DNA of 64,000 nucleotides from Eutreptiella sp. 'Long Island Sound 2002' (taxonomy: Eukaryota > Protista > Euglenida). The notes under the pieces are model-generated. The model worked only from the letters and a program-made list of their open reading frames with translations. It was not told the origin of the DNA and did not search any database. Made by a program: the position numbers and the translations under genes. How positions within the stretch are numbered: position 1 is the first letter of the stretch; each line of letters starts with the position of its first letter. The stretch spans positions 15,004,001 through 15,068,000 of the forward strand of contig OZ038378.1 of the NCBI GenBank assembly GCA_964036045.1, read 5' to 3'. Shown here piece by piece: positions 8,400 through 50,113 of the stretch.

Positions 8400-8690
8400 A
8401 TGGCACAGCTAAACGTTCTTGACCCTTCTTTTTGGTTTGATGATGTTGTGGCTGCTAGAGATGAGGATGAGGCAATTGTGGATAATTGCTATGAGGCAGC
8501 CACAGATCCCTCAAACTATGCCGCCAGTGTGAGTGACAGTGATAATGACCATGATGACCATGATGAACACAGCCCACCAGAATTCTATGATGATCAACTT
8601 GGGTCTGAAGTTGTTGATGATGGGCGGGATGAAGCAGTGGAGGTTCCTAAGTATTTACCTCCTGATGATAGCTCAAAAACAGCTCATTTT
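8400..8690 (+). pseudogene. Acidic ORF fragment, possible truncated transposase N-terminus
   Basis: ATG at 8400 opens an Asp/Glu-rich frame that runs into a dispersed repeat; three GTGTTCTTATTTTT-like units precede it. Confidence 0.25.
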
Positions 8691-10300
8691 TGCCTCAAAA
8701 TGGACCACCGCATCGCACCACGGCGTGGGAGATGCCTCATTGAACACCCACTTGCAATCATTTGATACCCCAATCACCATGGAAGAAGAATGGCCCTCAT
8801 TGGAGACGCCTACTTGACACATCAGCCATGGTCCTCAACTTTCACGACGATCGGTGGCACCATGGTGTGAAAGATGCCCAAATGCTAGGGAAGAAGAACA
8901 GCCCTCGTTGGAGACACCTACTTGACACAATGGCGGTCGTCGTGAACTTTCAGGTTGGTCGTCCTACAAACAACCTGAAAATTGCCATTTTTGGACACTA
9001 AATTGGCCGCAAAAACGGGCTAGACGGCTCGAAATGGCACAAAAACTTGATGCAAGTGATACGCATTTGCCCTGCAGTCGTTTTGAGCTTCTTCGATGCC
9101 AATTTTGAGCCACGGTGTCTACGAAAAGAGTCTACTTGGTGGTGGTGGTGGTGGTGTGGTGTTGCTGCTGTTCCTGAGATGTGTTGCTCACCTTGGACCC
9201 TAAGAAGGTTTGTAAACCCATGACAGGGTAGACCTAGCTCATTACTCAAGACTTACCGCTAGGAACGAGCTGGGTCCGAGTCTTGCTCATTGCATAGGAA
9301 GTCACTGCGGAAGAAGAACAACCCTCATTGGAGACGCCTTCTTGACGCACTTGCAATGGCTAAATGTTCAAGACGATCGTCATGAAGACATGCGGGAAAA
9401 CGGATGATGTTCACCCCAAAATAGACGACGGCATGGCACCACAGCCATCAACCCGAACGTTAACTGAAGCTTGAGCTAGGTCCTAGTCTTAATGCATAGG
9501 AAGTTGCTATGGAATAAGAATGGCCTGTGTTGGATATGGTTGTGCACGATCATCGCGAAAACGGTTCATTTTCACCTCACCTGTGTTAAGATGAGAATTG
9601 TTAGTGTGTCAAGCAGTATCTTTTTTGCTATGTAGGCTTTCTCATGGCATCTCAAAGCCAGTCGGTCAAGCAGGCGTCGGCAATGAGGGCGCTTCTTCTT
9701 GCGTAGCGATTGGGCTATACCCCACACCGTGGTGCCATCCAGTGGTCCATTTTACAAAGGGTGCCACATGCAAAGAGATACACAACAATGCCATGAGAGA
9801 GCGACCAAAAAATGGCCCTTTTTAGCCTGTTTTTGGGATGATCATCCTAAAAGTTTAGGACGCTCACTATTTTGTCAAGCTGGCATCTCCAACAAGGACC
9901 GTTCCGCTTCCATAGCGATTGGGCAAAGAAATGATTGCAAAGGGGTGTTGAATGAGGTGTCTCCCACACCGTGGTGCCACGCGGTGGTCCATTTGGGTCT
10001 ACACTGAGCAACAAATTTTACCACCATCTAGCTGCAGCAGCACCAAGCACCAGCAAACACCAGAAAAAGAAGCAGAAAAGGTCCTTTTTGGGGGTCACCG
10101 TGGCTCAAAACCGGCATCGAAGTAGCCCAAAACAACCATAGAGCAAATGTGCATCATGGTTTCATGCCATTTCAAGCCGTCTAGCCCGCTTGGCGGCCGA
10201 TCAAGTGACCAAAAATGGCTAATTTTAGCCTGTTTTCAGGACCATCGTGCTAAAAGTTGAGGACGGTCGCCGATGTGTAGGCATCTCCAATGGGGGCCAT
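8690..10300. repeat. Dispersed composite repeat family (GAAGAAGAACGGCCCTCATTGGAGACGCC type), cluster 1
   Basis: The same modules recur at 14040-15850, 43590-45140, 46620-46760, 48310-48370 and 49230-49790 in both orientations. Confidence 0.85.
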
Positions 10301-10359
10301 TCTCTTGGGGGTACGAACCTGACATCCCGGGCCGACGGGGACCATGAAAACGGACAAAA

Positions 10360-13300
10360 AGTTTCACTGTTGGCCTGTGTGGCCAACAGTGAAACTCACA
10401 TAAAAATTCAATTTCCCAAAACTGCACTGTGGGGGCCATATTTCATAATGTTTCACTGTCAACAGTGAAACAGCAACTGACATAGAAGCATTGAGGTGTG
10501 ATGGACGGCATCCCCAGAACCCCCCCCCCCTCCATTCCATCCCATGCGAGGCTGTGGACCAAGTGCAGCCACGAACAACTTCCCTCCGTGACAAACGAGT
10601 GTATGTAAAGGAGCAACACAAAACACAGGTAGGACACTTGTGCACACAGTGTACCTACAGAGTAGAAGAATATCCGTAATGAAAAATACTGTCACTGGCA
10701 AATGACATCAGCAAGGGAGAGAGTTTCACTGTTAACAGTGAAACGGAGTTTTATACTGCACTCCAAGGTGCAACGTGGAAACAATACAACACATATATGA
10801 CCCTGTTGGTGAAACTGACATAGAAGATAAACAGTACATGGCTCCTGCAGTGAAGTACAGTGCAAATACGCAGGGACAGTGTCATATGTCCGTGCAGTCC
10901 AAGACAGAGGCTGAAGGGTACAGTTTATGGTTCATAAATGATTGTTCCTGTCTGTTGAAAAACAAAAGCACATAGTGGACTTCCGGACCAAACTGTGTGC
11001 AGTAGGTCATCACAGAGCAGTGCAGTGACAGGAAAAAATCTAACACCGGTTTCAAGCATTTCGGGCACGGGTGTCATTATGGAAGTGTGTTTCACAGTTG
11101 ACAGTGAAAGTACGGTGTGATAACCCAGCAAACCAGCACACAACACACCAGCAACAGAACAACCAGAAGCAGTTCTCAAAAAAGCACAACTGACAACTCC
11201 TCCCATTCAGCCTACTGCTTTGCACTGCGGGTGCTCCGGGAAGCTTGCTCAAGCTGAGCCACACTAAGGATGGTCACGGCAGGGACTTTGGGTTTCCGCT
11301 TCAACCCGGGGGCTCCTCGTCCGCCGGATCCCACGCTGTTTGCGTCCTAAAGCTACGCTGCAATTGCTTGCTACTGGCCCTTAACAATGTTGTGCGTGCA
11401 AATCCACGGTATCCTCTAGGTCCATCTGGGTGAGGGTGGTTTGCTCAGTCGGCCGCTTGGCACCTGCCTTGGCAAGGGGCTTGGCCTCCCCCTTCTTGTT
11501 CCTTGTTGCCTTCGCGGGAGCTGGCTTTGCATCGACACTAACGGCATTGAAGGCAGGTCCGAGGACAGTTGGGGGCACATGAACCACAGAATCGACAGCA
11601 CGGGATGAGGTAGCTTCCGGGCAGACAGTTTCACTGTCAACAGTGAAACCTCCTCGGAGAGTCTAGTTTTTTGGAATGCTGGTGCCAGGGAATAGGGTGT
11701 CAAGGAACTTCTGATGCTGGCTTCCTTGCCTGTGTTCATCATCAGCCTTCACACCATTCTCTTTGATTCCTCCTGCTTGTTGTATGTGTGTCCGTCCATG
11801 TACAGCACATTCAAAAAGGGCTAGCATGATATGATTCATGGTAGGGTTGGGCCATAAAGAATAGTGCACAATTAATTTCCGTCTTTATTGTGCATCCCTT
11901 GGCAGAAGGAACCACTACAAGTAAATGAGGAGCAGGAAGCATTATGTTGCAGCACCAGTTTACACAATGTTAGTTTTAAGAACTGATAGTTGCCTTGTGT
12001 CTTGTGTTCAACAACATATTCAGCAAATTGAAAACAGTCAAAATAAGGTGAACCCAGTATCTTGCGTGATAGTGAAATACTAAAACTAATGCTCTAGTGA
12101 CAACCAAAGGCAAATGGTCCTTTGAACCGAATCGTCTGCAGCACACTTTCACTGTTGACAGTGAAACCCCATTAGAAGAGGTGCCTGGGGCATGCAATTT
12201 CGTACTCTTTGGGGCTGCTTTTCTCCCACTTCTGGCACCTCCTTGATCCCCGCAGGCTGCTAAAAAATGGAGGCTCTTGCAAAATTGGTGTGCCCATGTC
12301 ACATAATCCTTGTGTGATTTCTTGGCGGATCCTCTCTTTTGCAAAGGCAACCCAGTTGGCCAATGGTGGTTCCCGCAAGAGTACAAAACCACTTCCCCGC
12401 AACTCAAGCCGTTGTTCCTTGGTTAGTGTTGTCATAGCCCTTGCATTGGGGACCATTTTTGCCACTATCATCGGCTTTGCGAGTACCAGCATGTGGCGGA
12501 AGAACTTGAACACAGCAGCTACAAAGCGCAGAAGCCATTGCTTGGACCCACGACTCGGCTAGTCCTGCTTCAGATCTGCAATACTTCGTCTTGTTCGAGT
12601 ATTCAAACGCAACTCCAGAGCCACCTCCATAAAAGGCAAAGCTGGTCCTCCTCCCAGAGCGCATTCCACCAATGGGTCCCCATCTTGGCATAGCTCACCC
12701 CGATCCACAACGTCATACAACCCCGAGCAAATGTCTTGTAGGCTGAATGGGGAGGCACTATTGTCAGTCATTGTGCCCTCTGAGGCAGTACAGGTAGATT
12801 ATATACAGACAGAACAAGCAGACAACAACCAGTGGTTTCACTGTTGACATTGAAACTCAATCGTGGATAGGTATTAGTAGGCAGAATAGCAAAACTTGTG
12901 TACAGGGTGCAATATGCCACCTGCTACTAACAGGGAGTGGTGGCAGTTGGTTTCACTGTTGACAGTGAAAGTCTCAGTGCTTCGGTGCTGTGCAGGCCAA
13001 CCACCTGAAAGGCAGGAGAACAACACATGGAATGGTGGCACAATGGGGGAGTACAACTGCAATAACATCCTCCTCTGGCACCCCGTTGTCCCCCCACCAC
13101 GGCACAAGCACAAAGAAGCACAAGGGCACATAGCTGCAGGAACTTACCATATGTACTTGATGACCAGAAGTAGTTTCACTGTTGACAGTGAAACTACGTG
13201 TGATAACCTGGCCTGGGTGGATGAGATGACAAAGTAAGCAAACTCAAACAGTTTCACTGTTAACGGTGAAACTGTTTGCCATACTGTGGTGTTAATGGAT

Positions 13301-13916
13301 AAGCAGGAAAAACGAGTAAAAAGAAATATTTTTTTGAAAAAGGTTGTAAAAAACGGAACCGGAAATATCACCAGACTGTTGTGTGGTCCAGTAGATAACC
13401 ACCTCGTCTCGTCCCAGTGGGGGGCTAGGTTCGAATCCCGCTACGTCCCCAACCTAGCCACCAGGTGGCATATCGCACCACCACGTGGTCACCCACTAGG
13501 CACGGCAAGTGCCCCGTTGAGAAGGGTAACTCATCTAACACTACCAAACTGGTAGTTTTGTGACATGTTTGGTAGTATATTGGTGACCAAGTGGTGAAAC
13601 ACCAGATTCCTAGCCCGGTCAGTAAGACAGGTACTCCACCAGGACCTTGAGGTACCAGCACAATTGTTCAAATGCAAGGTAGTTTCACTGTTGACAGTGA
13701 AACTACCTTGCAGGACAGGTAGTTTCCCTGTTGAGAGTGAAACTACCTTGCACTGTTAACCTCACTTGGGTCCGTGCATACTCCACCACACCCAAATGAA
13801 CCACTACCAGCACCAGGGGGGGGGGGGGGTTGTAGACAAGTGGGAGGGGTTGGATACGGCCCAAAGTGGCATATAATGTGGCCTTTCACCTCGAGTTTCA
13901 CTGTTGATAGTGAAAC
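10360..13916. repeat. Irregular array of 13 conserved palindromes AGTTTCACTGT-NN-ACAGTGAAACT
   Basis: Copies start near 10360, 10450, 10722, 11089, 11627, 12147, 12835, 12950, 13170, 13246, 13673, 13718 and 13895; a half site lies near 14026. Confidence 0.95.
13376..13450 (+). other. Degenerate tRNA-like sequence
   Basis: TGGTCCAGTAG A-box-like motif and exact GGTTCGAATCCC B-box; stems do not close properly. Confidence 0.3.
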
Positions 13917-14039
13917 CTTGGCCCGTTGGGGCCTAAAAATTCAATTTCAAAAAACAGTAGTGGTCAAAAACTATTGTCTTCAGAAATCTACTGAAGTATT
14001 GGGTGTTTGTGGTCATTTTTTTGCACCAGTGAAACTACC

Positions 14040-15850
14040 TATCCCGGGTGCATGCCGGCACCTTAGGATGTCAAGTTCGTACCCCCAAGATTCTTCTTCC
14101 ATAGTGATTCGGCTATCAAATTATTGCAAATGTGTGTTCAATGAGGCCTCGCTCACGCCATACGCCGTGGTGCCATGCGGTGGCCAATTTGAAGGCAAAA
14201 ATGAGCCGTTTTTTTTTAGCTGTTTTTGAGGACAATCGTCCTCAAGGTGCAAGACCATATCCAATGCAGGCCGTTCTTCTTTCACTATAATTTCCTATGC
14301 ATTGAGCAAGACTAGGACCAAGCTCGGTCCTAGTCGTAAGTCTTGATTGCCGAGCTGGGTTTACCCTGTTGAGGTTTTGCAACCCTACTTGGGGTCCGGG
14401 GTGAGTAACACATTTTAGCAGCTGCAAGCAACAGCAGCAAGCAAGCAGCAAGCAGCAAGCAAGAAGCAAGCAAGCGATTAAAAAAATTTTGCCACAATGT
14501 GGCTCGAGGTTGGCATCTGAGTAGCTCAAAACGACCACAGAGCAAATGCGCATAATTTGTAACAAGTTTTGTGCAATTTCAAGCCGCCTGGCCTAGTTCT
14601 ATGGCCAATTTGCTGTCGAAAGATGGCCGTTTTCGGCCTGTTTTGAGGCATTTTTCAGAACGATGATCCTGAAAGTTGAGGATGATCACAAGTGTGCCAA
14701 CGCACTATCTCCAATGTGCCAACCAGCTTGGTCCTAGTAGAAGTCTTGATCACTGAGCTGGATTTACCCTGTCGAGGTTTTACAACCCTTCTTAGGCTCC
14801 AAGGGTGGGCAACACACTTCACGAGCAGCAAGCAGTAAGCCGCGGCAAGCAGCAAGCAGCAAGCAGCAGCAAGCAAGCAGGCGAGCAAAATATCTCTGGG
14901 CAGGGGAGGGGGGGGGGGGGGTTGGCTCAAAACCAGCATGCAAGTAGCTCAACACGACCACAAAGCTAATGCGCATCACCTGCAACAAGTTCTGTGCCAT
15001 TTCCGGCCGTCTTGCCCGTTTTATGGCCAATTTAGTGTCCAAAATGGCTCTTTTTTTTTTTTGCTGTTTTCAGGACTATCGTCCTGTTTGCAAGATGATC
15101 GTCCTATAAGTTCAAGCCGATCGCCACTACAAGTAAGATCCAATCTTTGTGCCATTTTCAAAAACTCTATCTCAGCGGAGCATCAAAAGACAAAGGGAAT
15201 GCACTTCATGAAATTTGAACATGCAAATTAAATTCCAAAATTTGAAATACATTAAAAACATGGTGCAACAAAGTGGGCATCTCAAAAGTTGTCAAATTAT
15301 GCGGCCTAGCGGACAAAGGCACTGCACACAAACCGCATGGCCTCATGTCATGGCTCGATGTCCCCCAAAAGACTTTTTGGCCGCCTGCTTGCTGCTGCTC
15401 GTTGCTGCGTGCTGCTAAAATGTGCTTCTCACCCTAGAGCCTAAGATGGGTTGTAAAGGAAACCCAACTTACAACCAGGCACCAGCTGGGTCCTCATGGT
15501 TGCCTTGAACCTACTTACAACCAGGACCCAGCTGGGTCCTCATGGTTGCCTTGAACCTACTTGAAGAACCGCTGATTTTCACCTCAAAATGGACTCCCGC
15601 ATGGCACCACAACACGAGAGACGCCTCTTTGAACACCCGTTTGAAATCATTTGACAGACCAATGGCCACGGAAGAAGAACGGCGTGTGTTGGAGACGCTT
15701 GCTTGACACACTGATGATTGTCCTAAACTCTGAGGCGTCTTGAAAACAGACTCAGATTGCCATTTTTTGGACACCAATTTGGCAATAGAATGGGAGAGAC
15801 GGCTCAAAATCACACACAACTTGATCCCTTTGAGCTGCTTGGATGACAAT
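14040..15850. repeat. Dispersed composite repeat family, cluster 2, with GCAA/GCAGCAA microsatellites
   Basis: Same modules as 8690-10300; includes a 46-bp tandem duplication at 15467-15558. Confidence 0.85.
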
Positions 15851-18782: not shown

Positions 18783-19602
18783 CTGGGGCGAGGTGCATAG
18801 GTTTGAGTAGGGTTGAGTCCTTTTGGGGAAATACGGGGCTGTGTTGACAAATTTGTGCAGGGTACAGAATAAATTCATGAATCGTTCTGCGACTTAAATC
18901 AAGCAACAGTAAGCACATTTGGAAAATTCGAAACAAAATCTGAGGACTCAAACTGCTTGCTTTGGTTTCAGTCCACGGTCTTCGGGGCACCTTTGACATA
19001 TGGGGTACAAAGCCCGAATGGCCCACAGAACAGGAGTGTCTGCCGTGTGATATCCCAATGGCTCCCTTATACATGGGCACGGGGCAGGGCAGTCCTCTGC
19101 CAATAAAAAACACCTTGCTTTGCACATCACAGCAAACGATGCCCACACAGCCATGGGGAGACAGCCAGGTACAATACACAGCAAAGGTGCAAATTCATCA
19201 GTACCACATCCGTGAAAAAATTGTCATTGGTGAACAGGGAACATATGAACCTGCACCCACAGTTCCCACCGAATGAACAAAACACGGGCCATTAAGACAG
19301 TTGGTGGTCAACTGCCAACGGTTGGCGGTAGAGTGCCGGCGTCAGCCAACCACAGGCCCAAAGTGGCGTCCTTGAATGTGGGTCCTTAGTGAAATTAGAG
19401 ACAAATTGTTGTTCGAAAACTGCCCTAGCACGGGGCTAGGGGGATACCCCGTCGAGGGCAGCGGTGAGCAGGCATCAAGTGCAGGGATGCAAAAATATGA
19501 GGTGCTGATGTCATCTGCCAGAGCAACCCCTGTCGTGTCCATGGTGTGGTATGCATGCCTTGTTTCGAGATCTGTGTGCAGCACAGTTCCACTATTGACA
19601 CC

Positions 19603-22450
19603 TCATGTGCCATGGACACCGGAGGCTGTGGTCACAAAACCATGGAAATCGGCTGCCACACCCTGTAAAGAGCTAAGCCCTATTTAAGTGCCAAAGGTCT
19701 CCTGCAAGTGGTGATGATGCGTGGTCCCCTTCACCCATTGTGCTCCCCTCATTCAATTTGATTAGCACGGCTGATGTGTGATCATGGAAACCACCATGCA
19801 TATGGAGCTGGTGGTGGTTGCTAACAGCACCCCTCTTTGCTGATTCACATTGGATGATCGGTGTAGATCCACTGAATGGCCCTGTCGTAGCCACTTTAAG
19901 CACCGGTTGCATCGTAATTTCTGGAACACCAGGCACATCATCAAGGCACAATCACTGCCATGTTGTTGGCGTTCATCCCATGGTGCATTCCAGTGGCATC
20001 CCCAACGCTGTTGGTCCTACACCAGAACAAGTGATTTCCAGCACGACCAATGTACACATAGGCACCTGCTCCCACTCATATCAGTTGCAGTGCTCCTTCA
20101 AACAATTGCACCCTGGGACTGCCTGGTGGGCCCTGACAATTTTCAGAAGGAACGCACAGTAGCCACATCCTGTGTATCTCGCCTTTATCTATTTCTCCTT
20201 TCACTGGATGCCCAATCTGACACTGGACCCTCAACAGTCCGACAAGCTGGAGCACAGGGACAAAAGAGAAACTGGGCTCTCCAGTAACTCCTGCAACCCC
20301 AGTTTATCCCACCAGTCCTCTGACTTCAGTTGGCTGAGATCCACAACCTCTTGTTCCTCATGCACCTGATCATTACAACAAAGAGCAGTCTCTGGCCTCT
20401 CCCTGAGCACACAGCTGTGCGCCATCTCTTGTATCTCGTGATCTGTGTGCATTGTTTGGGGGCGGGCGGGCGGGGGGGGGGGGGGGTTCGCTCTCCTTCT
20501 ATTGTAAGAGGACGTCCCACACACCCCAAGTCTGTGGCAGAGCATCATGAGTGGTATGAAGCATGGTTGCATATTTGAGACCCAATTTCCACATTCATGC
20601 GCTGGTAGATCATCCTGGAGACTGGTTTGCACCCATCCACGTGCTAGCACAGCTCACAGGTTCAGCCAGTGCACAGATCTGGCCAGGGTTGAGGGGACCG
20701 AAATTGCACCCCCTCCCCCCCCCAAATGAGGACACAGGAATGTCAGCAGTCTTGGGTTGGGGGCTCAGTCCCTTTCAAAATCACATGGCCTCCCATGCAC
20801 ATTTCCTTGACCTCTTGGAAGCTGTTCTCTGCCTCTGCACGGCAACAATTGTCCCTCTACAAGTACCCTTTTGTAACAGCACCTTCCAGGACGCCCTGAG
20901 AACCCAAAAAATGATAAAAGAACTAGCTAGGAACACATTGTTGTACAAAACTATGAAACTCAAGAATGATGGAAGAATTTCTATGAGCACTTGTTTTGTC
21001 TTGACCACCACCCATTTGACCTACACATGACAACAGCTTGGCTACGGCTGTGGGACTTTGTGTCAGGGGCATGCAGTATGTGCACTCGCCTTGCACAAGA
21101 CTCACCTCTTTCATGAGGGTGCACATGCGCATGAGGAGGATGCAGGATCCGACTATCAACCGTTTCAAAAAGCGGGTCACGGCGGATAGCACCTTTCATG
21201 GGAGTAATCCTCTGCTGCAACGCTTGCTTTGGGGATGGGTTGCTACTTCCAATGTTTCACAACGCCCCCCCCCCCTCGGTTGGATCGAGAACGCATTTGG
21301 CTCTTTCGTAGTTCTTCTCTGTGATTCTATGCTTTAAGTGTGTTCTGCGGCCTCAAGACAGTGGTGGCCACAAATGATGCCCTTGGCATGTGCTATTTCC
21401 TTGATTCCAAAGGCCACGATTTTAACAAAGCGCATGCAACGGGGTGTCCGTCTTTAGACAAGCCTGGGCTGAAGCAAGAGGACCAGGGATGTACCAGCTT
21501 GCACTCGAATCGCTGGCGCTGGGGGTTCGTCCCAGGGATTAGCAGACACTGGTCCTCATGAACTGAAACCACCATGTGGCATTGGAGTAGAGTGGCTCAT
21601 ATTTTGCTGAGTGAGACAACCAATGCAATACTCTAGTGGCCCTTGAGCAATGCAGCGAATTGTTCATGGCTCCCTGTCTGAGGCTGCCAATGAAACATCC
21701 TAGTGGAACTTGAGTAATCCAGCTCATGGCACATTATCTCAGCTACGCCTTCCTTCAGCCACACTTCTTTTCAGGGCCGTATCTATTTTTTTTGGTACCT
21801 GGCCGCAGTAGGACAAGGGGGAGGGGGAGGGGAGGGGGCTAGGCAGGCTACATTTGATACCATTTTTCAAATCGTTTTGCACTTGGTTGCAGTCGTTTGC
21901 GATCATTTTACTTAAAATCATGTGCAATCGTTTGTGAAAATTTTGTGCAAAATGTTGCCCAACAACAGCATAAAATCCTGCCCCTGCTCAGAACTTTTTT
22001 GGTTGATCTCCAACAGCCATATGCCGCCCCAACCTACAATGTGCTGAGGCATCTGAGCCTCTGGGAAGTAGCCACCATGGTACGACGGTCCTCTCCCACC
22101 TCCGAGGGAACTTGAAATTCCCCCCCTTTTCGCAACCCAGGCCCCCCCCCTCCTCCCAGGGACGGGGTGATTGTCATCAAGTAGCGTCATGGGGGAAAGG
22201 TCATTGTCAAAACACCTCCTTGATCCAGGTATCATGAGCAATGATTGAGAATGCATTCATCCAAAGCCAACTCAGTTGATGCAATGCGCTGTTTCACGAT
22301 GCACAGTCCTTGGCATGATTGCCGTACCACCACACAAAAAAATAAGCACACCCACACCACTGATTTTCACTGACCTCCATGCACCTGGGCACAAGCCCAA
22401 TATGCATGTGCAGGCGTGCAAATCGCTTGTAGGGCTGCATATATAGGTGT
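19603..22450 (-). pseudogene. Heavily decayed LINE-like element (duplicated at 26792-29640)
   Basis: Scattered endonuclease/RT-like remnants (PGRRGGAWVA, LLIPG, VQGECT); no long frame. Confidence 0.3.
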
Positions 22451-22684
22451 CTCCTGTGAAACCCTACTCATATACAAGAATCGGGCCATTGCTCCAGGCA
22501 ACACAATTGCTCTCTAAGAGCATGGACACCTGCATTTCTCCGTGACTCACCTCACACTCCTGTTTTGGAAGCAGCCATCAGGAGACATCAGTAAAAGCTA
22601 TATGCTGGACAGGCAGCATGGCAAGTTCAGATTGTGTTTGACAACCTCACTCTCAAAAGAAATCACATGGTGCAGCGGTCAGCC

Positions 22685-23305
22685 TCACTTGAGGTTGCTT
22701 GTGACAAAGTCCCAGTTGACAATCTTCCAAAAGCTCTCAAGATATGAGTCCCGCCGGTTCAAGTAGTCCACGTAGTATGCATGCTCCCAAACATCGCAGG
22801 TTAGCAAAGGAGTATATCCGTCGGTGATAGGAACAGCTGCATTCGAGGTGTTCACGATCTCCAAACTGCCATCAGCAGCCTGACATAACCACGTCCAGCC
22901 AGAACCAAAATTTCCCATTGCCGATTCTGCAAATTTCTTTTGAAAGTCCTCAACGGAACCGAACGTTTGGGAAATCTTAGCCTCCAAAGCGGGGGGCATG
23001 GCACTGCCATTGGGCTTCAAGCAGTTCCAGTAGAAGGAGTGATTAAAGTGCTGCGCCGCATTATTGAAAACCCCTTTCTTCGCAGCGTCGGCAGCAGATA
23101 TCTGAATGATTTCCTCAAGAGACTTGTTCTTCAGGCTAGGATCAGCGTCGCAGAAGCCATTCAGTTTCACGACGTATGCGTTGTGGTGCTTGTTGTAGTG
23201 CAGATCAAGTTGCTTTGCCGAAATCACAGGAGGAATACCATCCGCCACAGGGTATGCCAAGGTTGGCAGTGCGTGTTGAACACGAAGAAGCGAACGGCGG
23301 AACAT
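22685..23305 (-). CDS. sodB: Iron superoxide dismutase, intronless, with a short mitochondrial-type presequence (copy 1)
   Basis: 206 aa; LHYNKHHNAYV, NNAAQHFNHSFYW (AAQ indicates Fe type), FGSGWTWL and CDVWEHAYY; N-terminus MFRRSLLR. Confidence 0.97.
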   Translation of the reverse strand: MFRRSLLRVQHALPTLAYPVADGIPPVISAKQLDLHYNKHHNAYVVKLNGFCDADPSLKNKSLEEIIQISAADAAKKGVFNNAAQHFNHSFYWNCLKPNGSAMPPALEAKISQTFGSVEDFQKKFAESAMGNFGSGWTWLCQAADGSLEIVNTSNAAVPITDGYTPLLTCDVWEHAYYVDYLNRRDSYLESFWKIVNWDFVTSNLK

Positions 23306-23318
23306 TTATCGTCTGATT

Positions 23319-23341
23319 AGAAAAAATTGACACCCAGAAAA
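23319..23341 (-). other. Relict spliced-leader sequence 13 nt upstream of the SOD ATG (copy 1)
   Basis: The minus strand reads TTTTCTGGGTGTCAATTTTTTCT versus the Euglena SL as recalled, ACTTTCTGAGTGTCTATTTTTTTTCG. Confidence 0.7.
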
Positions 23342-23829
23342 CGTGACCTCATAGGGCCATGAATTTATTCAAACGCTGCCCAAACTGCGAGGTTCACAAC
23401 ATTGCAGCAAATGTTTGCGTTCAATTGCCCTGCTGCTGGGCTGAACAAAGCTAGGGAGGTTAGGACCTGTTCACCCTGCCCAACAAGGCATTGGACAGCC
23501 GTCCCACACTTCCAAAGTGCTCAAAAAAGAATACAACACCCAATGCATGAGGTGCCTTGGGGGGGCGGGGGGAGGGAGGTTCAACACTTGCTCCCTCCGG
23601 ACCAAGAGGATGAATGGTTTCAAACCTCCGCCTGTGACTCAACAACCACGCATGCTACCACCTGGACGAACCCACCGCTGATAGTCACTGCCAATCATTA
23701 CGAATGAACCCTCATATCTGATTGCCTTGGCCTTGGCGCAATTCCTTGGGCACCTTGCAACGTGACATTTATTGGTATCCACAAAGGTTGGTTAGGAATT
23801 CCCAACTCAGCGCCGCGGGCCCAAGCTCA

Positions 23830-25518
23830 CTGAACCCTTGTCCAGCCACCAACGATGTTTGTGCTCCCTATGACCCTCCCAACTGCTAACATCTGTACTG
23901 GGAGCCAAAGAGCCATTACAGGAGTCATATCCTGAGAGCATCTCATCATACCTGGGGTGTTCCATGTGATTCGTTACCCCACACGAATCCGAGGCAGTTT
24001 CCCCTCCCAACTGAAACTCCGTAGCCTCAAGCTCTGTCAATCCCAACTCCTCCAACAGACCCATCACCGCTACCCATGCCCCCGCAGCGGCCAGGAATGC
24101 TGTTTGTTCAAAGGGGATCCCCACCCCTCTTTGAAGTTCCTTGCTAAAGGTAATAGTATTCAAATGTTCATTTTGTGTGTACTACCCGACGTTTCTTGGG
24201 TGGCCAAAGTGTGTTACCCCACTTAACCAGTGGTATGTAGTGCACCTGTTGAAGTTGCCGTACCACATGGCCTTGGGAGCAATCATTTGGGTACCTACCT
24301 TTCCAATATTGTCCGCAAATAAAAGAGGCTCGGCTTGAGTGACGTCAAAGATTTTTCTCAAGCATCAAGTAGCTACCCCATTGGTTATGTTCCCGAAAGA
24401 GCTGCACAACTTTTAAAATCCCCCCCGGTTCTTATGTAGCCCAACCGCCTGCCCACCTCTTGCAATTTTTCTGAGCCCTCCCTCTTCACCCCAAACCCAA
24501 AGGGGGGGCAACCAACCCTCCTATCCACAAAAGGAACGAGGGGCTGGCCTAGGAAGTTAGGGAATGGTGTACGCACATGGGCTCCATGCCTATGGCGTCT
24601 AACCTGCCCTATGTACAGCTTGGAATGGCCAAATCAGCCAATCTATCATTTTTTGGGTGGTCGGCTAAAGGGGGAGCACCTGACGCAGGGCGCATGTGGT
24701 GCGCTTGCGGCGTGCGGCGTGGAGATTTAGCCATGTCTCCCGACCAAGCAGCTGTATATTAACACGTGGCTAAGCCGGAAGAGCTAGAATTTCCCTCCGC
24801 TATTTGGACATGGGTGGAAAAAATTGACAATCTAGCAAGGAGACCCCAAACTAGGGTGGTGGTTGCTCCCAAGGGGCCATCTTATGTACTTTCACCTTGG
24901 GAAGCGCTGGATAGGGCAAGACGGAGGGATGTTTACACAGGTTTTGTACCTAATACTCAGCTATTCTAAGGGGGCATTTTAAGAGGGAGTAAGATGCAAC
25001 GCATTCACCCATTCCGGGTGAACCCACAGTAAAATTAGCACCCCTCACACACACACCACAGTGCATCAATGGGCGCCACTGGTGAGCTCATAAGCGGACA
25101 CAAAGGGCACCCCTTGCACCATTTTGTCTCCTTCCGCAATGTACATCCTGCTCTTACTACAACACCAAACTGATTTGGGAAGTTTTTGACCAAGCGCCAC
25201 TTTGGCACGAATCAACACACCAAGCATGCCCGCTCTCTCTTGAAGATGCAGAGGACACTCTACCTCAATAGCAATCCAGCTTTTAGCAAGATCTAGGGAA
25301 GCTGCAGCACACCTTTGGTTTGTTTGCATAACGGGGCTTCAAATGGTCAGGTTGCCTTGTCCGCATTAGGCTCTGGCTACGCCTGCCCCATAGCTGTCAT
25401 CGCCCTCTGTCCACCGTGTCAGCGCCCCACGCTTCTCGAGGCGCCTTTGGATTGTGCATCCCTACCCTTACTCCACGCTGTTCTCTGGCCCTATGGACCC
25501 TATGGGGTTATGCGTACA
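23830..25518 (-). pseudogene. Decayed non-LTR retrotransposon RT region
   Basis: SLDLAKSWIAIE ... GDKMVQGVPFVS resembles the RT LDLxKAFD and GxRQGCP motifs; related pieces at 36152-38300 and 61380-62100. Confidence 0.5.
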
Positions 25519-26130: not shown

Positions 26131-29100
26131 TGCTCCGAAACCCCCACCAACAATGCCACATCTACTCATCCAACTCCGGCGAGTACACACCCATGCCTGC
26201 TGCACTGCCAATTGGTGACGATGTTAGCTCCAACACCAACCCATTATGCCTGCCCACCGCCAGAAGGGCTCCATGCGCACTTGTGCCACAGACCCCGGGC
26301 GCACGAGGCACTGCATGAAGGTATGGCTGTGCACCCACTGCACTCACAGGCCCAGTTGCACCTGCCCTAGTCCCCCTTCAGAAAGTAGCAGCATTAAAAT
26401 GGGCATAGTCAAATGCTAGGTACTCAAATTTAGCGCCACTTGGTGAATCATGTTTAATTGGAAGAGCACATGATCCGTTGGGGCGTACGCCCTTGTTGTG
26501 AAATTGACAAACCATGCGACCCCGGAAGCAAAAAAGAAACGCACGCCCTTGCATGCTGAGCGATAGGGAAGCCAACATCCTAGCCCGTGATAGCATTTTC
26601 GCAATGACTGGTGCATGACACTTCTCCACCCATTGCCCAACAGCATCCCCAAATACTTCACACTGTGAGTCCTGCTACAACCTTTGGCTGTGCCAGGTCC
26701 AGGTCAGACATTGTTACTATGGCATATGCTTTTCTGAAATTGTCGAACAGGCCTGACAAAAATTTGAAAAACTGCAGTGTGTATGTCAACGTCATGTGCC
26801 ATGGACACCGGAGGCTGTGGTCACAAAACCATGGAAATCGGCTGCCACACCCTGTAAAGAGCTAAGCCCTATTTAAGTGCCAAAGGTCTCCTGCAAGTGG
26901 TGATGATGCGTGGTCCCCTTCACCCATTGTGCTCCCCTCATTCAATTTGATTAGCACGGCTGATGTGTGATCATGGAAACCACCATGCATATGGAGCTGG
27001 TGGTGGTTGCTAACAGCACCCCTCTTTGCTGATTCACATTGGATGATCGGTGTAGATCCACTGAATGGCCCTGTCGTAGCCACTTTAAGCACCGGTTGCA
27101 TCGTAATTTCTGGAACACCAGGCACATCATCAAGGCACAATCACTGCCATGTTGTTGGCGTTCATCCCATGGTGCATTCCAGTGGCATCCCCAACGCTGT
27201 TGGTCCTACACCAGAACAAGTGATTTCCAGCACGACCAATGTACACATAGGCACCTGCTCCCACTCATATCAGTTGCAGTGCTCCTTCAAACAATTGCAC
27301 CCTGGGACTGCCTGGTGGGCCCTGACAATTTTCAGAAGGAACGCACAGTAGCCACATCCTGTGTATCTCGCCTTTATCTATTTCTCCTTTCACTGGATGC
27401 CCAATCTGACACTGGACCCTCAACAGTCCGACAAGCTGGAGCACAGGGACAAAAGAGAAACTGGGCTCTCCAGTAACTCCTGCAACCCCAGTTTATCCCA
27501 CCAGTCCTCTGACTTCAGTTGGCTGAGATCCACAACCTCTTGTTCCTCATGCACCTGATCATTACAACAAAGAGCAGTCTCTGGCCTCTCCCTGAGCACA
27601 CAGCTGTGCGCCATCTCTTGTATCTCGTGATCTGTGTGCATTGTTTGGGGGCGGGCGGGCGGGGGGGGGGGGGGTTCGCTCTCCTTCTATTGTAAGAGGA
27701 CGTCCCACACACCCCAAGTCTGTGGCAGGGCATCATGAGTGGTATGAAGCATGGTTGCATATTTGAGACCCAATTTCCACATTCATGCGCTGGTAGATCA
27801 TCCTGGAGACTGGTTTGCACCCATCCACGTGCTAGCACAGCTCACAGGTTCAGCCAGTGCACAGATCTGGCCAGGGTTGAGGGGACCGAAATTGCACCCC
27901 CTCCCCCCCCCAAATGAGGACACAGGAATGTCAGCAGTCTTGGGTTGGGGGCTCAGTCCCTTTCAAAATCACATGGCCTCCCATGCACATTTCCTTGACC
28001 TCTTGGAAGCTGTTCTCTGCCTCTGCACGGCAACAATTGTCCCTCTACAAGTACCCTTTTGTAACAGCACCTTCCAGGACGCCCTGAGAACCCAAAAAAT
28101 GATAAAAGAACTAGCTAGGAACACATTGTTGTACAAAACTATGAAACTCAAGAATGATGGAAGAATTTCTATGAGCACTTGTTTTGTCTTGACCACCACC
28201 CATTTGACCTACACATGACAACAGCTTGGCTACGGCTGTGGGACTTTGTGTCAGGGGCATGCAGTATGTGCACTCGCCTTGCACAAGACTCACCTCTTTC
28301 ATGAGGGTGCACATGCGCATGAGGAGGATGCAGGATCCGACTATCAACCGTTTCAAAAAGCGGGTCACGGCGGATAGCACCTTTCATGGGAGTAATCCTC
28401 TGCTGCAACGCTTGCTTTGGGGATGGGTTGCTACTTCCAATGTTTCACAACGCCCCCCCCCCCTCGGTTGGATCGAGAACGCATTTGGCTCTTTCGTAGT
28501 TCTTCTCTGTGATTCTATGCTTTAAGTGTGTTCTGCGGCCTCAAGACAGTGGTGGCCACAAATGATGCCCTTGGCATGTGCTATTTCCTTGATTCCAAAG
28601 GCCACGATTTTAACAAAGCGCATGCAACGGGGTGTCCGTCTTTAGACAAGCCTGGGCTGAAGCAAGAGGACCAGGGATGTACCAGCTTGCACTCGAATCG
28701 CTGGCGCTGGGGGTTCGTCCCAGGGATTAGCAGACACTGGTCCTCATGAACTGAAACCACCATGTGGCATTGGAGTAGAGTGGCTCATATTTTGCTGAGT
28801 GAGACAACCAATGCAATACTCTAGTGGCCCTTGAGCAATGCAGCGAATTGTTCATGGCTCCCTGTCTGAGGCTGCCAATGAAACATCCTAGTGGAACTTG
28901 AGTAATCCAGCTCATGGCACATTATCTCAGCTACGCCTTCCTTCAGCCACACTTCTTTTCAGGGCCGTATCTATTTTTTTTGGTACCTGGCCGCAGTAGG
29001 ACAAGGGGGAGGGGGAGGGGAGGGGGCTAGGCAGGCTACATTTGATACCATTTTTCAAATCGTTTTGCACTTGGTTGCAGTCGTTTGCGATCATTTTACT

Positions 29101-29872
29101 TAAAATCATGTGCAATCGTTTGTGAAAATTTTGTGCAAAATGTTGCCCAACAACAGCATAAAATCCTGCCCCTGCTCAGAACTTTTTTGGTTGATCTCCA
29201 ACAGCCATATGCCGCCCCAACCTACAATGTGCTGAGGCATCTGAGCCTCTGGGAAGTAGCCACCATGGTACGACGGTCCTCTCCCACCTCCGAGGGAACT
29301 TGAAATTCCCCCCCTTTTCGCAACCCAGGCCCCCCCCCTCCTCCCAGGGACGGGGTGATTGTCATCAAGTAGCGTCATGGGGGAAAGGTCATTGTCAAAA
29401 CACCTCCTTGATCCAGGTATCATGAGCAATGATTGAGAATGCATTCATCCAAAGCCAACTCAGTTGATGCAATGCGCTGTTTCACGATGCACAGTCCTTG
29501 GCATGATTGCCGTACCACCACACAAAAAAATAAGCACACCCACACCACTGATTTTCACTGACCTCCATGCACCTGGGCACAAGCCCAATATGCATGTGCA
29601 GGCGTGCAAATCGCTTGTAGGGCTGCATATATAGGTGTCTCCTGTGAAACCCTACTCATATACAAGAATCGGGCCATTGCTCCAGGCAACACAATTGCTC
29701 TCTAAGAGCATGGACACCTGCATTTCTCCGTGACTCACCTCGCACTCCTGTTTTGGAAGCAGCCATCAGGAGACATCAGTAAAAGCTATATGCTGGACAG
29801 GCAGCATGGCAAGTTCAGATTGTGTTTGACAACCTCACTCTCAAAAGAAATCACATGGTGCAGCGGTCAGCC

Positions 29873-30493
29873 TCACTTGAGGTTGCTTGTGACAAAGTCC
29901 CAGTTGACAATCTTCCAAAAGCTCTCAAGATATGAGTCCCGCCGGTTCAAGTAGTCCACGTAGTATGCATGCTCCCAAACATCGCAGGTTAGCAAAGGAG
30001 TATATCCGTCGGTGATAGGAACAGCTGCATTCGAGGTGTTCACGATCTCCAAACTGCCATCAGCAGCCTGACATAACCACGTCCAGCCAGAACCAAAATT
30101 TCCCATTGCCGATTCTGCAAATTTCTTTTGAAAGTCCTCAACGGAACCGAACGTTTGGGAAATCTTAGCCTCCAAAGCGGGGGGCATGGCACTGCCATTG
30201 GGCTTCAAGCAGTTCCAGTAGAAGGAGTGATTAAAGTGCTGCGCCGCATTATTGAAAACCCCTTTCTTCGCAGCGTCGGCAGCAGATATCTGAATGATTT
30301 CCTCAAGAGACTTGTTCTTCAGGCTAGGATCAGCGTCGCAGAAGCCATTCAGTTTCACGACGTATGCGTTGTGGTGCTTGTTGTAGTGCAGATCAAGTTG
30401 CTTTGCCGAAATCACAGGAGGAATACCATCCGCCACAGGGTATGCCAAGGTTGGCAGTGCGTGTTGAACACGAAGAAGCGAACGGCGGAACAT
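29873..30493 (-). CDS. sodB: Iron superoxide dismutase (copy 2)
   Basis: Translation identical to copy 1. Confidence 0.97.
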   Translation of the reverse strand: MFRRSLLRVQHALPTLAYPVADGIPPVISAKQLDLHYNKHHNAYVVKLNGFCDADPSLKNKSLEEIIQISAADAAKKGVFNNAAQHFNHSFYWNCLKPNGSAMPPALEAKISQTFGSVEDFQKKFAESAMGNFGSGWTWLCQAADGSLEIVNTSNAAVPITDGYTPLLTCDVWEHAYYVDYLNRRDSYLESFWKIVNWDFVTSNLK

Positions 30494-30506
30494 TTATCGT
30501 CTGATT

Positions 30507-30529
30507 AGAAAAAATTGACACCCAGAAAA
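30507..30529 (-). other. Relict spliced-leader sequence (copy 2)
   Basis: Identical to 23319-23341. Confidence 0.7.
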
Positions 30530-31048
30530 CGTGACCTCATAGGGCCATGAATTTATTCAAACGCTGCCCAAACTGCGAGGTTCACAACATTGCAGCAAAT
30601 GTTTGCGTTCAATTGCCCTGCTGCTGGGCTGAACAAAGCTAGGGAGGTTAGGACCTGTTCACCCTGCCCAACAAGGCATTGGACAGCCGTCCCACACTTC
30701 CAAAGTGCTCAAAAAAGAATACAACACCCAATGCATGAGGTGCCTTGGGGGGGCGGGGGGAGGGAGGTTCAACACTTGCTCCCTCCGGACCAAGAGGATG
30801 AATGGTTTCAAACCTCCGCCTGTGACTCAACAACCACGCATGCTACCACCTGGACGAACCCACCGCTGATAGTCACTGCCAATCATTACGAATGAACCCT
30901 CATATCTGATTGCCTTGGCCTTGGCGCAATTCCTTGGGCACCTTGCAACGTGACATTTATTGGTATCCACAAAGATTGGTTAGGAATTCCCAACTCAGCG
31001 CCGCGGGCCCAAGCTCACTGAACCCTTGTCCAGCCACCAACGATGTTT

Positions 31049-31151
31049 AGGTTATGCACCTTGCACTGAAACATGCACTGCACCACAAGTCCAACACACA
31101 GCCTGTCAATTGCTGACAACAACTCGGGGTTCAGGTCCATGCCCCTACCCG
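31049..31151 (-). repeat. Split direct repeat B2 (103 bp)
   Basis: Matches 31435-31537 with one C/T difference. Confidence 0.95.
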
Positions 31152-31351
31152 GGGGCAGGGCATGCGCAGCCAGGCAGGCTGCTTCCAGTAGACAGTGTTT
31201 GCATAGCGGTGGCGGCAGGGCTGACTGTACTGAGGCACAAGCGCTGGGTGCATTCAGCGACCCGGAGGGGGGGGGGTGGGTGGGGGCAGGGCACTGGCCG
31301 GTGTGGTGGGTGGGGAAGCAGATCCAGGGCCAGTAAGGGTGGGTGGGTGGG

Positions 31352-31434
31352 GGACCCAACCATCAGTGCAAAGAACACACTAAGCAACACAGTCGGGGTC
31401 CTAAACTATAGTTTATATCCATAAACTAAGGTTT
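31352..31434 (-). repeat. Split direct repeat A2 (83 bp)
   Basis: Identical to 36069-36151. Confidence 0.95.
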
Positions 31435-31537
31435 AGGTTATGCACCTTGCACTGAAACATGCATTGCACCACAAGTCCAACACACAGCCTGTCAATTGCT
31501 GACAACAACTCGGGGTTCAGGTCCATGCCCCTACCCG
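31435..31537 (-). repeat. Split direct repeat B1 (103 bp)
   Basis: Abuts A2, forming the circle-junction sequence AAGGTTT|AGGTTATG on the plus strand. Confidence 0.95.
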
Positions 31538-31709
31538 ATGAATACGCTGTGCGGCTCCCCCCCCCCCCCTGTCTCAAGAAAACTGTGGAGAGGGCACGGG
31601 GGGGTAGGGCAGGGTGGCGCTGGCTTACCTCGAAAACCGGGTAGCTCCCACGCGTTGCCCTTGCGGCCGCCGTGGGGTCTCCCTGCGCCTGTCCCCCCCC
31701 CCCCCCCCC

Positions 31710-33294
31710 TCAGCCTGTGTATCGCACTGTCCCTACATGCAGGGGTGTGTGCACGCGTTCCTGGTCCAAACGTGCCTGTGTGCATAGTGCTGCTACAAGC
31801 ATGTCGTCTGGAGAGTCATAAGATCTCCAGCGGGATGGAACATCCGCTGGGTTCAACTCTCCCTTGACCCACAGCAGTTCAACCACCGCCCCAGACCAAC
31901 GCAGAGTGTGCTGCAGCTGGCGCAGCAGCCTGTTTTGTGCATCACAGGCTGTGGCTGCTCTGCCCTTCATGGCAGAAAACAATGATGACATGTTGTCCCC
32001 ATAGATTCGCAGGAACTGCACCCGTCTGTATGCCCCCGTGCGCACTGTCTCTACAATACTTGCCAGCTCCGCTGCTTGCTGTGTAGCTACCCAATCAGGC
32101 AACCTCTTAATACGCATCCCCAGTGAATCCCCCCAGATGCCTACATAATAATTCTGGCCCTGTCGGGCCGCGTCGCAGTAGAACGTATCAGTTGATCCCA
32201 GGGTGCCGTGGGGCACCCATGGGACCAAAGCACATGCAATGCCTTCCAGGAGGCCCCGCAGGACCTTGGGTGGTGTACACTTCGCAGTACTGGGTCCCTG
32301 GTTGAGCCAACGGTACGCGCCAGCCAGGAAAGGCTGTGCCCCCCTCCCCGGCCGCAGTGCCCACTGTAGTTTCCCCAGCATGCGCCTCAGCGCTTTGCCC
32401 GAATATCCGGTGGTGGCTAGTCTAAGCCAACAGCAGACGAGGTGTGCCTGCAGCGCTGGGGCATTCTGCACCCCTCCCTGGTCTCCCCCGACCACCTTTC
32501 CCATCCACTTTACGCGGTCGCTGGGGTCCAGAGAGGACTTTGGGCTGACCACCCAACCGGCCTTTTCTAAATCCGCCTTCGTACGCAGTGCCTGCTGACG
32601 GACCGAGCTGGAGTGCCTGCCTGCCACCAACACATCATCTGCATATTGGATCACCACCACCGACCCTGGGAAATATTCTACAAGGAAAGCTGCCAAAATG
32701 GCTTGCGCCATGGAGGGACTGTGCTTCCAACCGAATGGCAGGGACTGCAGTGCGTACACCCGCCCCCCCACCCCCACCCTGATGCTGTCGCGCTGCGGTG
32801 GGGGTAGTCGACAGCTCCAGAAGTGGTTGCTTATATCAAGGGTGCAGTAAAACAATTGCTCCCCACGTAGTGCGCACAATTGCAGCAGGTGTGCCAGCCC
32901 ATCCAATGTGGGCAATTTAAATGGTAGGGGGTCCACACAGCGGGCATTCAGGTCCAGCATGGGTAAGATCAGGGAGCACTTGTGCTCATTCTTGTGCTGG
33001 ACATACGCCCTTGCATTCGGCGGTTTTTGCGACGGGGAAACCGCAACAAGCTGTTGCCCCAACAAGTGCAACCAACGGCGGGTCCGATGAAAATGGTTGG
33101 GGGGGGGTGCCCTCAGAGGCCCACAGGAAATTAGCCGGAGCCATGGCATCCCAGACACTGTCCGGTATGTCAATGGCCCCCGTGTCCCCCAGGCCCTTCT
33201 CGGCCACCTCTACTGGCACCACCAACTTAGACCGGTGTCTCCGCGAGGATGACGTGCTGATGTCCGGCGGTGAGATGTCCGTGGCCGCTTCCAC
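31710..33294 (-). CDS. Reverse transcriptase-RNase H ORF of the YR retrotransposon; N-terminus joined by a +1 frameshift near 33100
   Basis: TLDISNHFW, LPFGWKHSP and QYADD RT motifs; FYCDAA, QQAAELA, YGDN and NPADVPSR RNase H motifs. The N-terminal frame starts at ATG 33294. Confidence 0.92.
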
Positions 33295-33307
33295 ATTGGT
33301 GGTCGGC

Positions 33308-36080: not shown

Positions 36081-36151
36081 CAGTGCAAAGAACACACTAA
36101 GCAACACAGTCGGGGTCCTAAACTATAGTTTATATCCATAAACTAAGGTTT
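36069..36151 (-). repeat. Split direct repeat A1 (83 bp), 5-prime end of the element
   Basis: Identical to A2 and ends in the GTTT core. Confidence 0.95.
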
Positions 36152-45140: not shown

Positions 45141-45399
45141 GGTGATTGTCCTAAACTTTGAGTGTACCCTTTGCGAACGGCCGGTAAGGGAACTTTTGAA
45201 TGGAGCGAAAATCACGCGAATATGGGTGCACAAATGTACGGTTTTGGCCAGAAAAGACTTGTTTCATAGAGTTGGGATGGTAGCAATATTTTTAAAAATT
45301 CTAAAAAAATTAAAATCTAGGTGCCTAGAAAAAGAAATGGCCCTTTTTTGAGACACTATGGTGCGACGGTGTCCCCCAAAATGCCCTATTCCTACCGTG

Positions 45400-49600: not shown

Positions 49601-50113
49601 AGCTATTTTTGAAGACGGTCGTCCCGAAGATTTGTCGCGAACACCGGTGTGTCATGTAGGCATGTCCAATGAGGGCCGTTCTTCTTCCATGGTGATTGGG
49701 CTATGAGATGATTGTAACTAGGTGTTCAATGAGGCGTCTCTCCTGCCGTGGTACCATGTGGTGGTCCACTTTGAGGTGGAAATGGGCCGCTTTTCAACGA
49801 GGTTCCAGAGAACCGTCGGGACCCCGCTCAGTTTGTATCATCTTCCCACACTTTTGAACTGAAACACATTGAATCATTCGTGAGACGAGCTTGGTCCTAG
49901 TCGCAATTCTTGATCACGGCTTCTTATTCTTTGGTAAAAACTATCCTCAACAAACAACAGGACACCGAACCTTTGTCCCTTTGGGGGGGAGGGTTGGACA
50001 GGGGGGGGGGGGGTGTACACGGTGCAACAACCTTGCCATGGTGCCATGTTGTGAGAATCCTAGTAGGGTGGTGCATGGGTCCACATTGTGAGAATTCTGG
50101 TTGGGGTGAATTA

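Follow-up and report, generated by a model that had tools for sequence, protein, structure and literature searches.

The genome of the euglenid Eutreptiella sp. 'Long Island Sound 2002' contains, in a stretch of 64,000 nucleotides referred to here as the window (assembly GCA_964036045.1, contig OZ038378.1, positions 15,004,001 to 15,068,000), an array of short palindromes that fills an insertion of 3,786 bp (10304–14089 in window coordinates) with 24-bp terminal inverted repeats (TIRs) and a 5-bp target-site duplication (TSD), ATTCT. Judged from its sequence and that of its relatives, the array probably represents the internal architecture of one non-autonomous, internally deleted DNA transposon of the cut-and-paste type, and its palindromes are putative binding sites for a protein encoded by the element. 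Most of the coding DNA is missing from the window copy, and the remainder therefore looks like a pure array of palindromes between unrelated segments. A first-pass annotation had described such an array, with irregular spacing, unique intervening DNA and a directional centre that is mostly TG, and this description was confirmed: the element holds 12 copies of the palindrome, one extended copy and a lone half-site.

Ends, copies and palindromes of the element

The element interrupts a complex interspersed repeat (8670–10303 and 14090–15830), the similarity of which breaks off at 10303 and restarts at 14090. Alignment of the junctions with uninterrupted copies of this host repeat revealed a clean insertion with duplication of the five bases ATTCT; the empty sites used for this comparison are paralogous copies of the host repeat and not orthologous alleles. 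Further members of the host repeat family, the target of the transposon, are located at 43600–45160, 46600–46800, 48310–48374 and 49240–49830, with units of about 200–420 bp in both orientations. The features of the element are listed below in window coordinates; loci with relatives are designated L027 to L036, and positions in them follow the colon.

10299..10303: target-site duplication, left copy (ATTCT, 5 bp); the same five bases flank both TIRs and are single in the paralogous empty sites near 49680 and 44280
10304..14089: whole element, 3,786 bp, a non-autonomous and internally deleted TIR transposon copy; host repeat stops at 10303 and resumes at 14090; L036 is collinear, L029, L028 and L030 are longer relatives
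10304..10327, plus strand: left TIR of 24 bp; just two matches in the whole window, inverted and 23/24 identical, 0 expected
10360..10396: palindrome 1, extended (15-bp arms, 5-nt centre); outer arm is the left-end subterminal half-site; same form in L027 and L036
10450..10471: palindrome 2, centre CA; orthologue L029:17536
10723..10744: palindrome 3, centre TA; orthologues L029:17265 and L028:16542, both with TA centre
11089..11110: palindrome 4, centre TG, 2 mismatches; orthologue L029:16902 has one of the same mismatches
11628..11649: palindrome 5, centre CA; orthologue L029:16360
12146..12167: palindrome 6, centre TG; within a 210-bp piece (12039–12248) that is inverted relative to L029:12820–13030
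12272..12771, minus strand: remnant of the large gene, which encodes protein 1 (a putative transposase); roughly the initial 165 of 709–745 codons; pieces of open reading frame align to P0142 and relatives, DNA homology to both L030 and L029 breaks off at 12272
12835..12856: palindrome 7, centre TG, 64 bp upstream of the remnant's start; orthologue L030:9916, 64 bp upstream of the ATG of the intact frame
12950..12971: palindrome 8, centre TG; orthologue L029:9796
13126..13652: segment in the opposite orientation to L030 and L028, with palindromes 9 and 10 and a tRNA-like stretch; matches L030:9103–9615 on the plus strand, neighbouring blocks on the minus strand
13173..13194: palindrome 9, centre TG, exact; orthologue L030:9137
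13251..13272: palindrome 10, centre TA; orthologue L030:9218
13682..13703: palindrome 11, centre TG, exact; paired with palindrome 12 through a tandem duplication of 40 bp
13722..13743: palindrome 12, centre TG, 2 mismatches; corresponds to L030:9038, edge of the rearranged block
13895..13916: palindrome 13, centre TG; orthologue L030:8868
14027..14035, plus strand: lone right-end subterminal half-site; mirrors the outer arm of palindrome 1 when the ends are aligned as inverted repeats
14066..14089, minus strand: right terminal inverted repeat, 24 bp; inverted match to the left TIR
14090..14094: target-site duplication, right copy (ATTCT, 5 bp); same bases as the left flank

TIRs are also present in L029, L030 and L036. 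The copy at L036:4668–8468 aligns collinearly with the window element for 3,804 bp (94.5% identity) and possesses the same palindromes and both TIRs, but is flanked by a different 5-bp duplication of its own. TSDs of 5 bp were found in three copies (ATTCT in the window, ATGGC in L029 and CAGGT in L036). The internal deletion junction of the copy in L027 is the same as that of the window copy, which is a member of a non-autonomous subfamily that has been copied whole to new sites. The longer relatives cover a range of 4.6–8.9 kb (L030 with 4.64 kb, L029 with 8.85 kb, and also L028). The central open frame has 18 relatives at 64–92% identity, of which 17 are located on further long contigs in assembly ERZ25074135; six of the relatives' loci were fetched for comparison. 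At 90% identity the encoded proteins form clusters of 8 and 35 members, which are distributed over many contigs and include an intact form of 745 residues. Paired TIRs, TSDs of fixed length and locus-specific sequence, and empty sites are the structural attributes that define class II TIR transposons of the cut-and-paste type, and all of them are found here. Two further observations concern the surroundings of relatives. Immediately beyond the left TIR of the L029 element there is a piece of another family member (L029:8122–8785), which suggests that one copy inserted into or beside another, and BLAST self-matches uncovered a long array of repeats with a period of about 52 bp, in both orientations, downstream of the copy in L030 (L030:16465–22130).

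The palindromes were located with the natural copy at 13682–13703 as query, its two central bases being left free. At up to three mismatches the 22-bp motif occurs 12 times in the window (palindromes 2 to 13 of the list) and at no further place in the 64 kb, as compared with 0 sites in 100 dinucleotide shuffles. The 9-nt half-site was found 18 times against 0.69 expected occurrences, and all of them are located between 10361 and 14035. The confinement of the motif to some 3.6 kb that had been noticed initially is thus borne out, except that the lone half-site at 14027–14035 lies just beyond the end (13916) given previously and extends the span of palindromes and half-sites to 10360–14035. The distance from one palindrome start to the next varies between 40 and 689 bp. 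Eight of the 12 centres are TG, two CA and two TA; across sites of the family copies, no pattern was seen that relates the orientation of the centre to position or to asymmetry of the outer bases. Palindromes 11 and 12 are the product of a tandem duplication (40-bp period, 1.9 copies), and for the segments between palindromes no second copy was found within the window. Extension of palindromy by three or more pairs past the 22 bp was observed in four of the 12 window copies and at six of 60 sites in five family copies. Given that 40 of these 60 sites lack pairing beyond the core, extended palindromy was rejected as a general feature. The outermost pair is frequently broken, and the conserved unit therefore comprises about 20 bp. 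In an alignment of the two element ends as inverted repeats, the half-sites occupy identical columns, approximately 35–50 bp inside each TIR. The layout common to the family is a half-site just inside each end and full sites every 40–690 bp across all non-coding DNA, with one full site within the coding sequence of full-length copies. A 29-bp stretch that occurs at 10401–10429 and again at 13934–13962 (83% identical, direct and not inverted) adjoins the first and the last palindrome and is unexplained.

For every window palindrome, other subfamilies have an orthologue in the matching position, in some cases with an identical mismatch or likewise with a TA centre. Of the palindromes in about 95 kb of related loci, none lies outside sequence of the family, although a single stray half-site does. 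Between subfamilies, palindrome columns are 88–93% identical as compared with 76–83% for other non-coding columns (Fisher p 1e-5 to 2e-5). No such difference between palindromes and other columns exists when the two young copies are compared with each other, as expected for neutral decay after insertion.

Five distant relatives that share 25–32% protein identity possess palindromes too, yet each has a different one of its own, 17–22 bp in length. The copy numbers are three in L032, at least seven in L035, nine in L031, 13 in L033 and 21 in L034, with none in shuffled sequences. These palindromes are mostly intergenic, with a few located within coding sequence, and they form clusters 43–120 nt upstream of the start of the large gene and 26–142 nt after its stop. 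The first nine bases of the L031 TIRs are those of the window element.

Encoded proteins and relation to known transposons

The longer copies encode a protein of 709–745 residues (protein 1), whose open reading frame (ORF) is uninterrupted in L030 and split into several open pieces in L029 and L028. About the first 165 codons, corresponding to the 5' quarter, are kept in the window copy, with one premature stop and no frameshift in the kept part and one large deletion; its two ORF pieces correspond to residues 1 to ~155 in P0142 and relatives. A second gene, which is entirely missing from the window copy, persists as decayed remains in L029 and L028; its homologues are a 722-residue ORF in L035 and ORFs in L033.

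An exhaustive phmmer search with protein 1 yielded 488 representatives at E ≤ 0.001, each standing for a cluster at 50% identity in environmental data. Many of them comprise 650–820 residues and are 24–36% identical over most of their length, and all those looked up are unnamed metagenomic proteins encoded on contigs of 2–10 kb. An alignment of 51 diverse members revealed eight invariant columns (D162, R243, P245, D247, H334, E378, G433 and R437 in P0142 numbering) and some 20 further columns that are nearly invariant. Pfam gave no match for protein 1 in any of these 51 members, for the second gene or for the small ORFs between palindromes. Likewise, NCBIfam returned nothing for protein 1, and neither protein 1 (single sequence and profile) nor the second gene matched a PDB entry by sequence.

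With the 51-sequence alignment as input, AlphaFold (AF2) produced a model of protein 1 with a predicted local distance difference test (pLDDT) value of 83 and a predicted template modelling (pTM) score of 0.81; an earlier run with 12 near-identical sequences had reached a pLDDT of 32 and was discarded. The core of the model has the order strand–strand–(long helix)–strand–helix–strand–helix–strand and is followed by a large helical region, with D162 on the first strand and D298 just past the fourth. No Foldseek match was significant by E-value, and the only ones with high probability were the P-element transposase of Drosophila (0.91, 0.84), Hermes (0.30–0.57) and a Pandoravirus protein of the hAT family (0.72). 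Based on this model, protein 1 is a probable DDE transposase with an RNase-H fold and an inserted helical domain: the predicted strand order and the invariant aspartate fit an RNase-H-like core followed by a helical region, as in the P-element and Hermes enzymes.

By contrast, several properties separate the element from the P and hAT superfamilies. The TSD measures 8 bp in hAT and 7–8 bp in P elements, whereas it is 5 bp in all three copies described above. None of the 51 members has a Pfam match to the hAT dimerisation, BED, THAP or P-element domains, and template modelling (TM) scores are low. The 5-bp TSD is the only feature that the element has in common with Transib and RAG1-like transposons; there is no RAG1 Pfam match in the 51 members and no RAG1 or Transib chain among the Foldseek matches listed. 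Of Sola, Zator, Kolobok, Novosib, Dada and Academ, none is known to have a 5-bp TSD. In two-gene TIR transposons such as CACTA/En-Spm and PIF/Harbinger, a second protein binds repeated motifs near the ends. The longer relatives described here resemble them in that they carry a second conserved gene, but this gene has no recognisable domain, and TSD length and termini differ. That its product might take part in binding is pure inference.

The element is thus a TIR transposon outside the hAT and P features that were tested, and there is a fair chance that it belongs to an unclassified superfamily. According to the first-pass annotation, its reading would fall if the motif were a fixed internal part of one known transposable element. 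In substance the motif is such a part, albeit of an element that is not a known one. Tentatively, and with more reserve than for the nature of the window copy itself, we suggest that an unclassified superfamily of eukaryotic DDE transposons may be characterised by a lineage-specific palindrome of 17–22 bp around every gene and near both ends, a 5-bp TSD, termini that are conserved across 25–30% protein identity, a co-evolving pair of protein and site serving end recognition and self-regulation, and occasional modular deletion at palindrome centres. If it is a true superfamily, it would comprise at least 488 protein clusters at 50% identity for which there is no Pfam or NCBIfam model.

Hardly any DNA transposons of euglenids have been described. 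Our searches turned up a single paper on Euglenozoa, which reports Merlin elements of kinetoplastids as a first (PMC8101967). What is described here is the full anatomy of a new family, including its ends, its duplication, autonomous and non-autonomous forms, and a large unannotated protein family with a confident fold model. Moreover, the exchange of the palindrome sequence between lineages with retention of its layout provides a natural data set on the co-evolution of a DNA-binding protein and its sites. The finding also offers annotators of protist and metagenome assemblies a simple signature for these elements, which are presently called as hypothetical genes.

Putative function of the palindromes

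We infer that the palindromes serve as protein-binding sites because the motif occurs within the element only, is mirrored at both of its ends, is conserved in active lineages, has been replaced from lineage to lineage and is retained in deletion derivatives. Iterated protein-binding sites were also among the options of the first-pass annotation, and this is the one that we favour. Each palindrome would bind a dimer of an element-encoded protein, either the N-terminal part of the transposase or the product of the second gene. Occupation of many sites may aid the recognition and pairing of the two element ends, and the clusters of sites next to gene starts and ends would probably also regulate the element's own genes.

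Multi-copy subterminal repeats that are bound by the transposase occur in foldback-type and other TIR transposons, among them maize Ac and En/Spm. For the Mutator-like element Muta1, a larger number of subterminal repeats leads to stronger transposase binding and excision (PMC5499845), and for the hAT element Herves, multi-copy subterminal transposase-binding repeats are reported to have been tested experimentally (PMC3143072). In the family studied here, too, a short motif occurs many times near both ends, is missing outside and is kept in non-autonomous deletion derivatives. Unlike in those elements, the unit is a palindrome of 20–22 bp and not a direct repeat, the sites are scattered across more than 1 kb of each arm, including places between internal genes and even inside coding sequence, and the sequence has been replaced wholesale between lineages with the layout being kept, in combination with a 5-bp TSD. 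Another comparison is offered by the hrs (homologous regions) of baculoviruses, which are species-specific imperfect palindromes at several intergenic places that are bound by a dimeric protein encoded by the same element. This is a likeness of layout only; what is described here is a chromosomal transposon of 4–9 kb, with no viral gene and no homology.

Several points weigh against the reading as a transposon with sites for an element-encoded protein. Concerted evolution among the sites could inflate their apparent conservation. Sites in intergenic regions in the middle of the element, far from its ends, and once in an ORF are unusual for end-recognition motifs and fit a gene-regulatory or structural role as well, and perfect palindromy is as compatible with a hairpin or cruciform function as with the binding of a dimer. 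The L031 element has TIRs but no clear TSD. As to protein 1, the Foldseek E-values are weak (0.01–0.2) and the TM-scores range from 0.2 to 0.44, the latter being the maximum for the P element; designation as a transposase is not backed by any Pfam, NCBIfam or PDB sequence match, and its catalytic residues are putative.

An unlikely alternative, but the strongest of those considered, is that the palindromes act as hairpins in a transcript or in single-stranded DNA, where they would be transcript-end or processing signals, or promoter and terminator modules that delimit the individual genes of a multi-gene element. Hairpins that flank the genes of some large DNA viruses are the nearest likeness. 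Such a role would agree with the presence of palindromes in nearly every intergenic region of L031, L033, L034 and L035, with tandem clusters right after the stop and right before the start of the large gene, and with palindromes 6 and 7 of the window, which are placed a few bases past the stop of the remnant frame and 64 bp upstream of its start, respectively. The predicted stems are stable, with 9–14 bp and −6 to −19 kcal/mol (z −3 to −7.5); the DNA hairpin of palindrome 1 reaches −19.3 kcal/mol (z −7.5). At one orthologous site a compensatory change was found in the flanking pair. However, some copies are located in coding sequence and read through in frame, and the outermost sites of the element are half-sites that are unable to fold. 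In seven palindromes (4, 6, 7, 8, 10, 12 and 13) mismatches are one-sided and uncompensated, and the absence of pairing past the core at 40 of 60 sites likewise argues against this reading. A search of the window against Rfam gave nothing at gathering thresholds, and the hairpins produced sub-threshold miRNA-like matches only.

Hairpin signals at transcript ends had been proposed before in connection with an endogenised viral or giant-transposon segment. Of this proposal, the assignment to a transposon and the placement of palindromes next to genes in the relatives hold, while no viral hallmark was found: element ORFs are devoid of Pfam domains. A viral origin was also rejected when neither the palindrome (exact or with its centre left free) nor the TIR nor the protein profile had a match in 2.9 million viral contigs. 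Searches of JGI metagenomes with the palindrome returned 24 loci that were judged unrelated. They contain single sites, except for one tandem triplet of 81 bp (L019), and have GC contents of 26–32%, 40–43% and 53–66%. The match in L014 resembles a bacterial operator. In JGI contigs L003–L026, the same 20 outer bases with a TATA centre recur towards the ends of numerous contigs from peat metagenomes (about 62% GC), apparently unrelated to the euglenid element.

Even less probable, in our judgement, is that the palindromes are recombination sites or hotspots for deletion, inversion and exchange of modules, be it in a cassette-like system or through breakage provoked by the palindromes. A 4.4-kb module with the second gene is present in L029 and L028 and missing from L030; the left edge of this deletion coincides exactly with a palindrome centre and its right edge is 21 bp from another. 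Similarly, the block 13126–13652 is inverted or relocated among copies, with an inversion between the window and L030, and in four copies one of its edges is no more than 8–10 bp from a palindrome centre. According to our own rough estimate, which is not the output of a tool, about four of some 14 breakpoints lie no more than 10 bp from a centre, as compared with about 7% of the sequence (binomial p ~0.01). On the other hand, the edges of the main deletion in the window, the other edge of the inverted block and an inversion between L029 and L028 are 40–570 bp away from any palindrome, with junctions that lack repeats. The latter inversion, of 1.3–1.9 kb, is located inside the second-gene module (L029:14311–16196 versus L028:14198–15475), and neither repeat nor palindrome is present at its junctions. 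The order of segments is fixed in the two full copies, window and L036, which are collinear throughout, and the centre types TG, CA and TA are inherited with their flanks and not flipped. Furthermore, no recombinase or integrase domain was detected in the 114 window ORFs of at least 120 residues or in the ORFs of related elements. The shufflon or cassette system envisaged at first, for which a linked recombinase is expected, is thus not supported in that form. As to reordering of segments at the core, which had been suggested as a check, a minority of the breakpoints between subfamilies coincide with palindrome centres and most lie elsewhere. We take the breaks at palindromes to reflect palindrome-provoked breakage rather than a dedicated cassette system.

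Finally, the earlier suggestion that tiny TIR elements are lined up in tandem, or the alternative that a separate miniature palindromic invader left its footprint, is very hard to maintain: although the segments are formally bounded by inverted half-sites and vary widely in length, they do not recur alone, no duplications flank single palindromes, the positions are orthologous across subfamilies, palindromes are absent beyond family members both in the window and in the DNA that flanks five related loci, and the 3.8-kb unit, with L036 as its collinear counterpart, transposed whole with TIRs and a TSD of its own.

Neighbouring sequences in the window

Inside the inverted block of the element, the stretch 13380–13450 looks tRNA-like by eye and is conserved at L030:9340–9420; neither ARAGORN, which called no tRNA in the window, nor Rfam supports it. 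In the L029 element, ARAGORN calls a tRNA-Ser(tga) at L029:14787–14858 without confirmation by Rfam.

Outside the element, the window contains a duplication that is 99.9% identical (19600–23860 and 26789–31048, continuing at 36148–37000). Each duplicate includes an intronless gene for an Fe/Mn superoxide dismutase on the minus strand (ORFs 22685–23305 and 29873–30493), which is 73–75% identical to transcripts with the prefix GGOE01, a prefix that stands for Euglena longa (10.1101/573709); by this one gene, a euglenid host is probable. The second duplicate is broken by 5.1 kb and resumes at 100% identity, with flanks that overlap by four bases. The inserted sequence (31049–36147, minus strand) is a young retroelement with an apparent 4-bp duplication, as its ORFs encode reverse transcriptase (RVT_1) and zinc-knuckle domains. 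Two ordinary host genes were also recognised: an ORF of at least 120 residues with a Plus-3 domain (E 2.7e-24) and an ORF on the minus strand (55976–57943) with a BTB domain.

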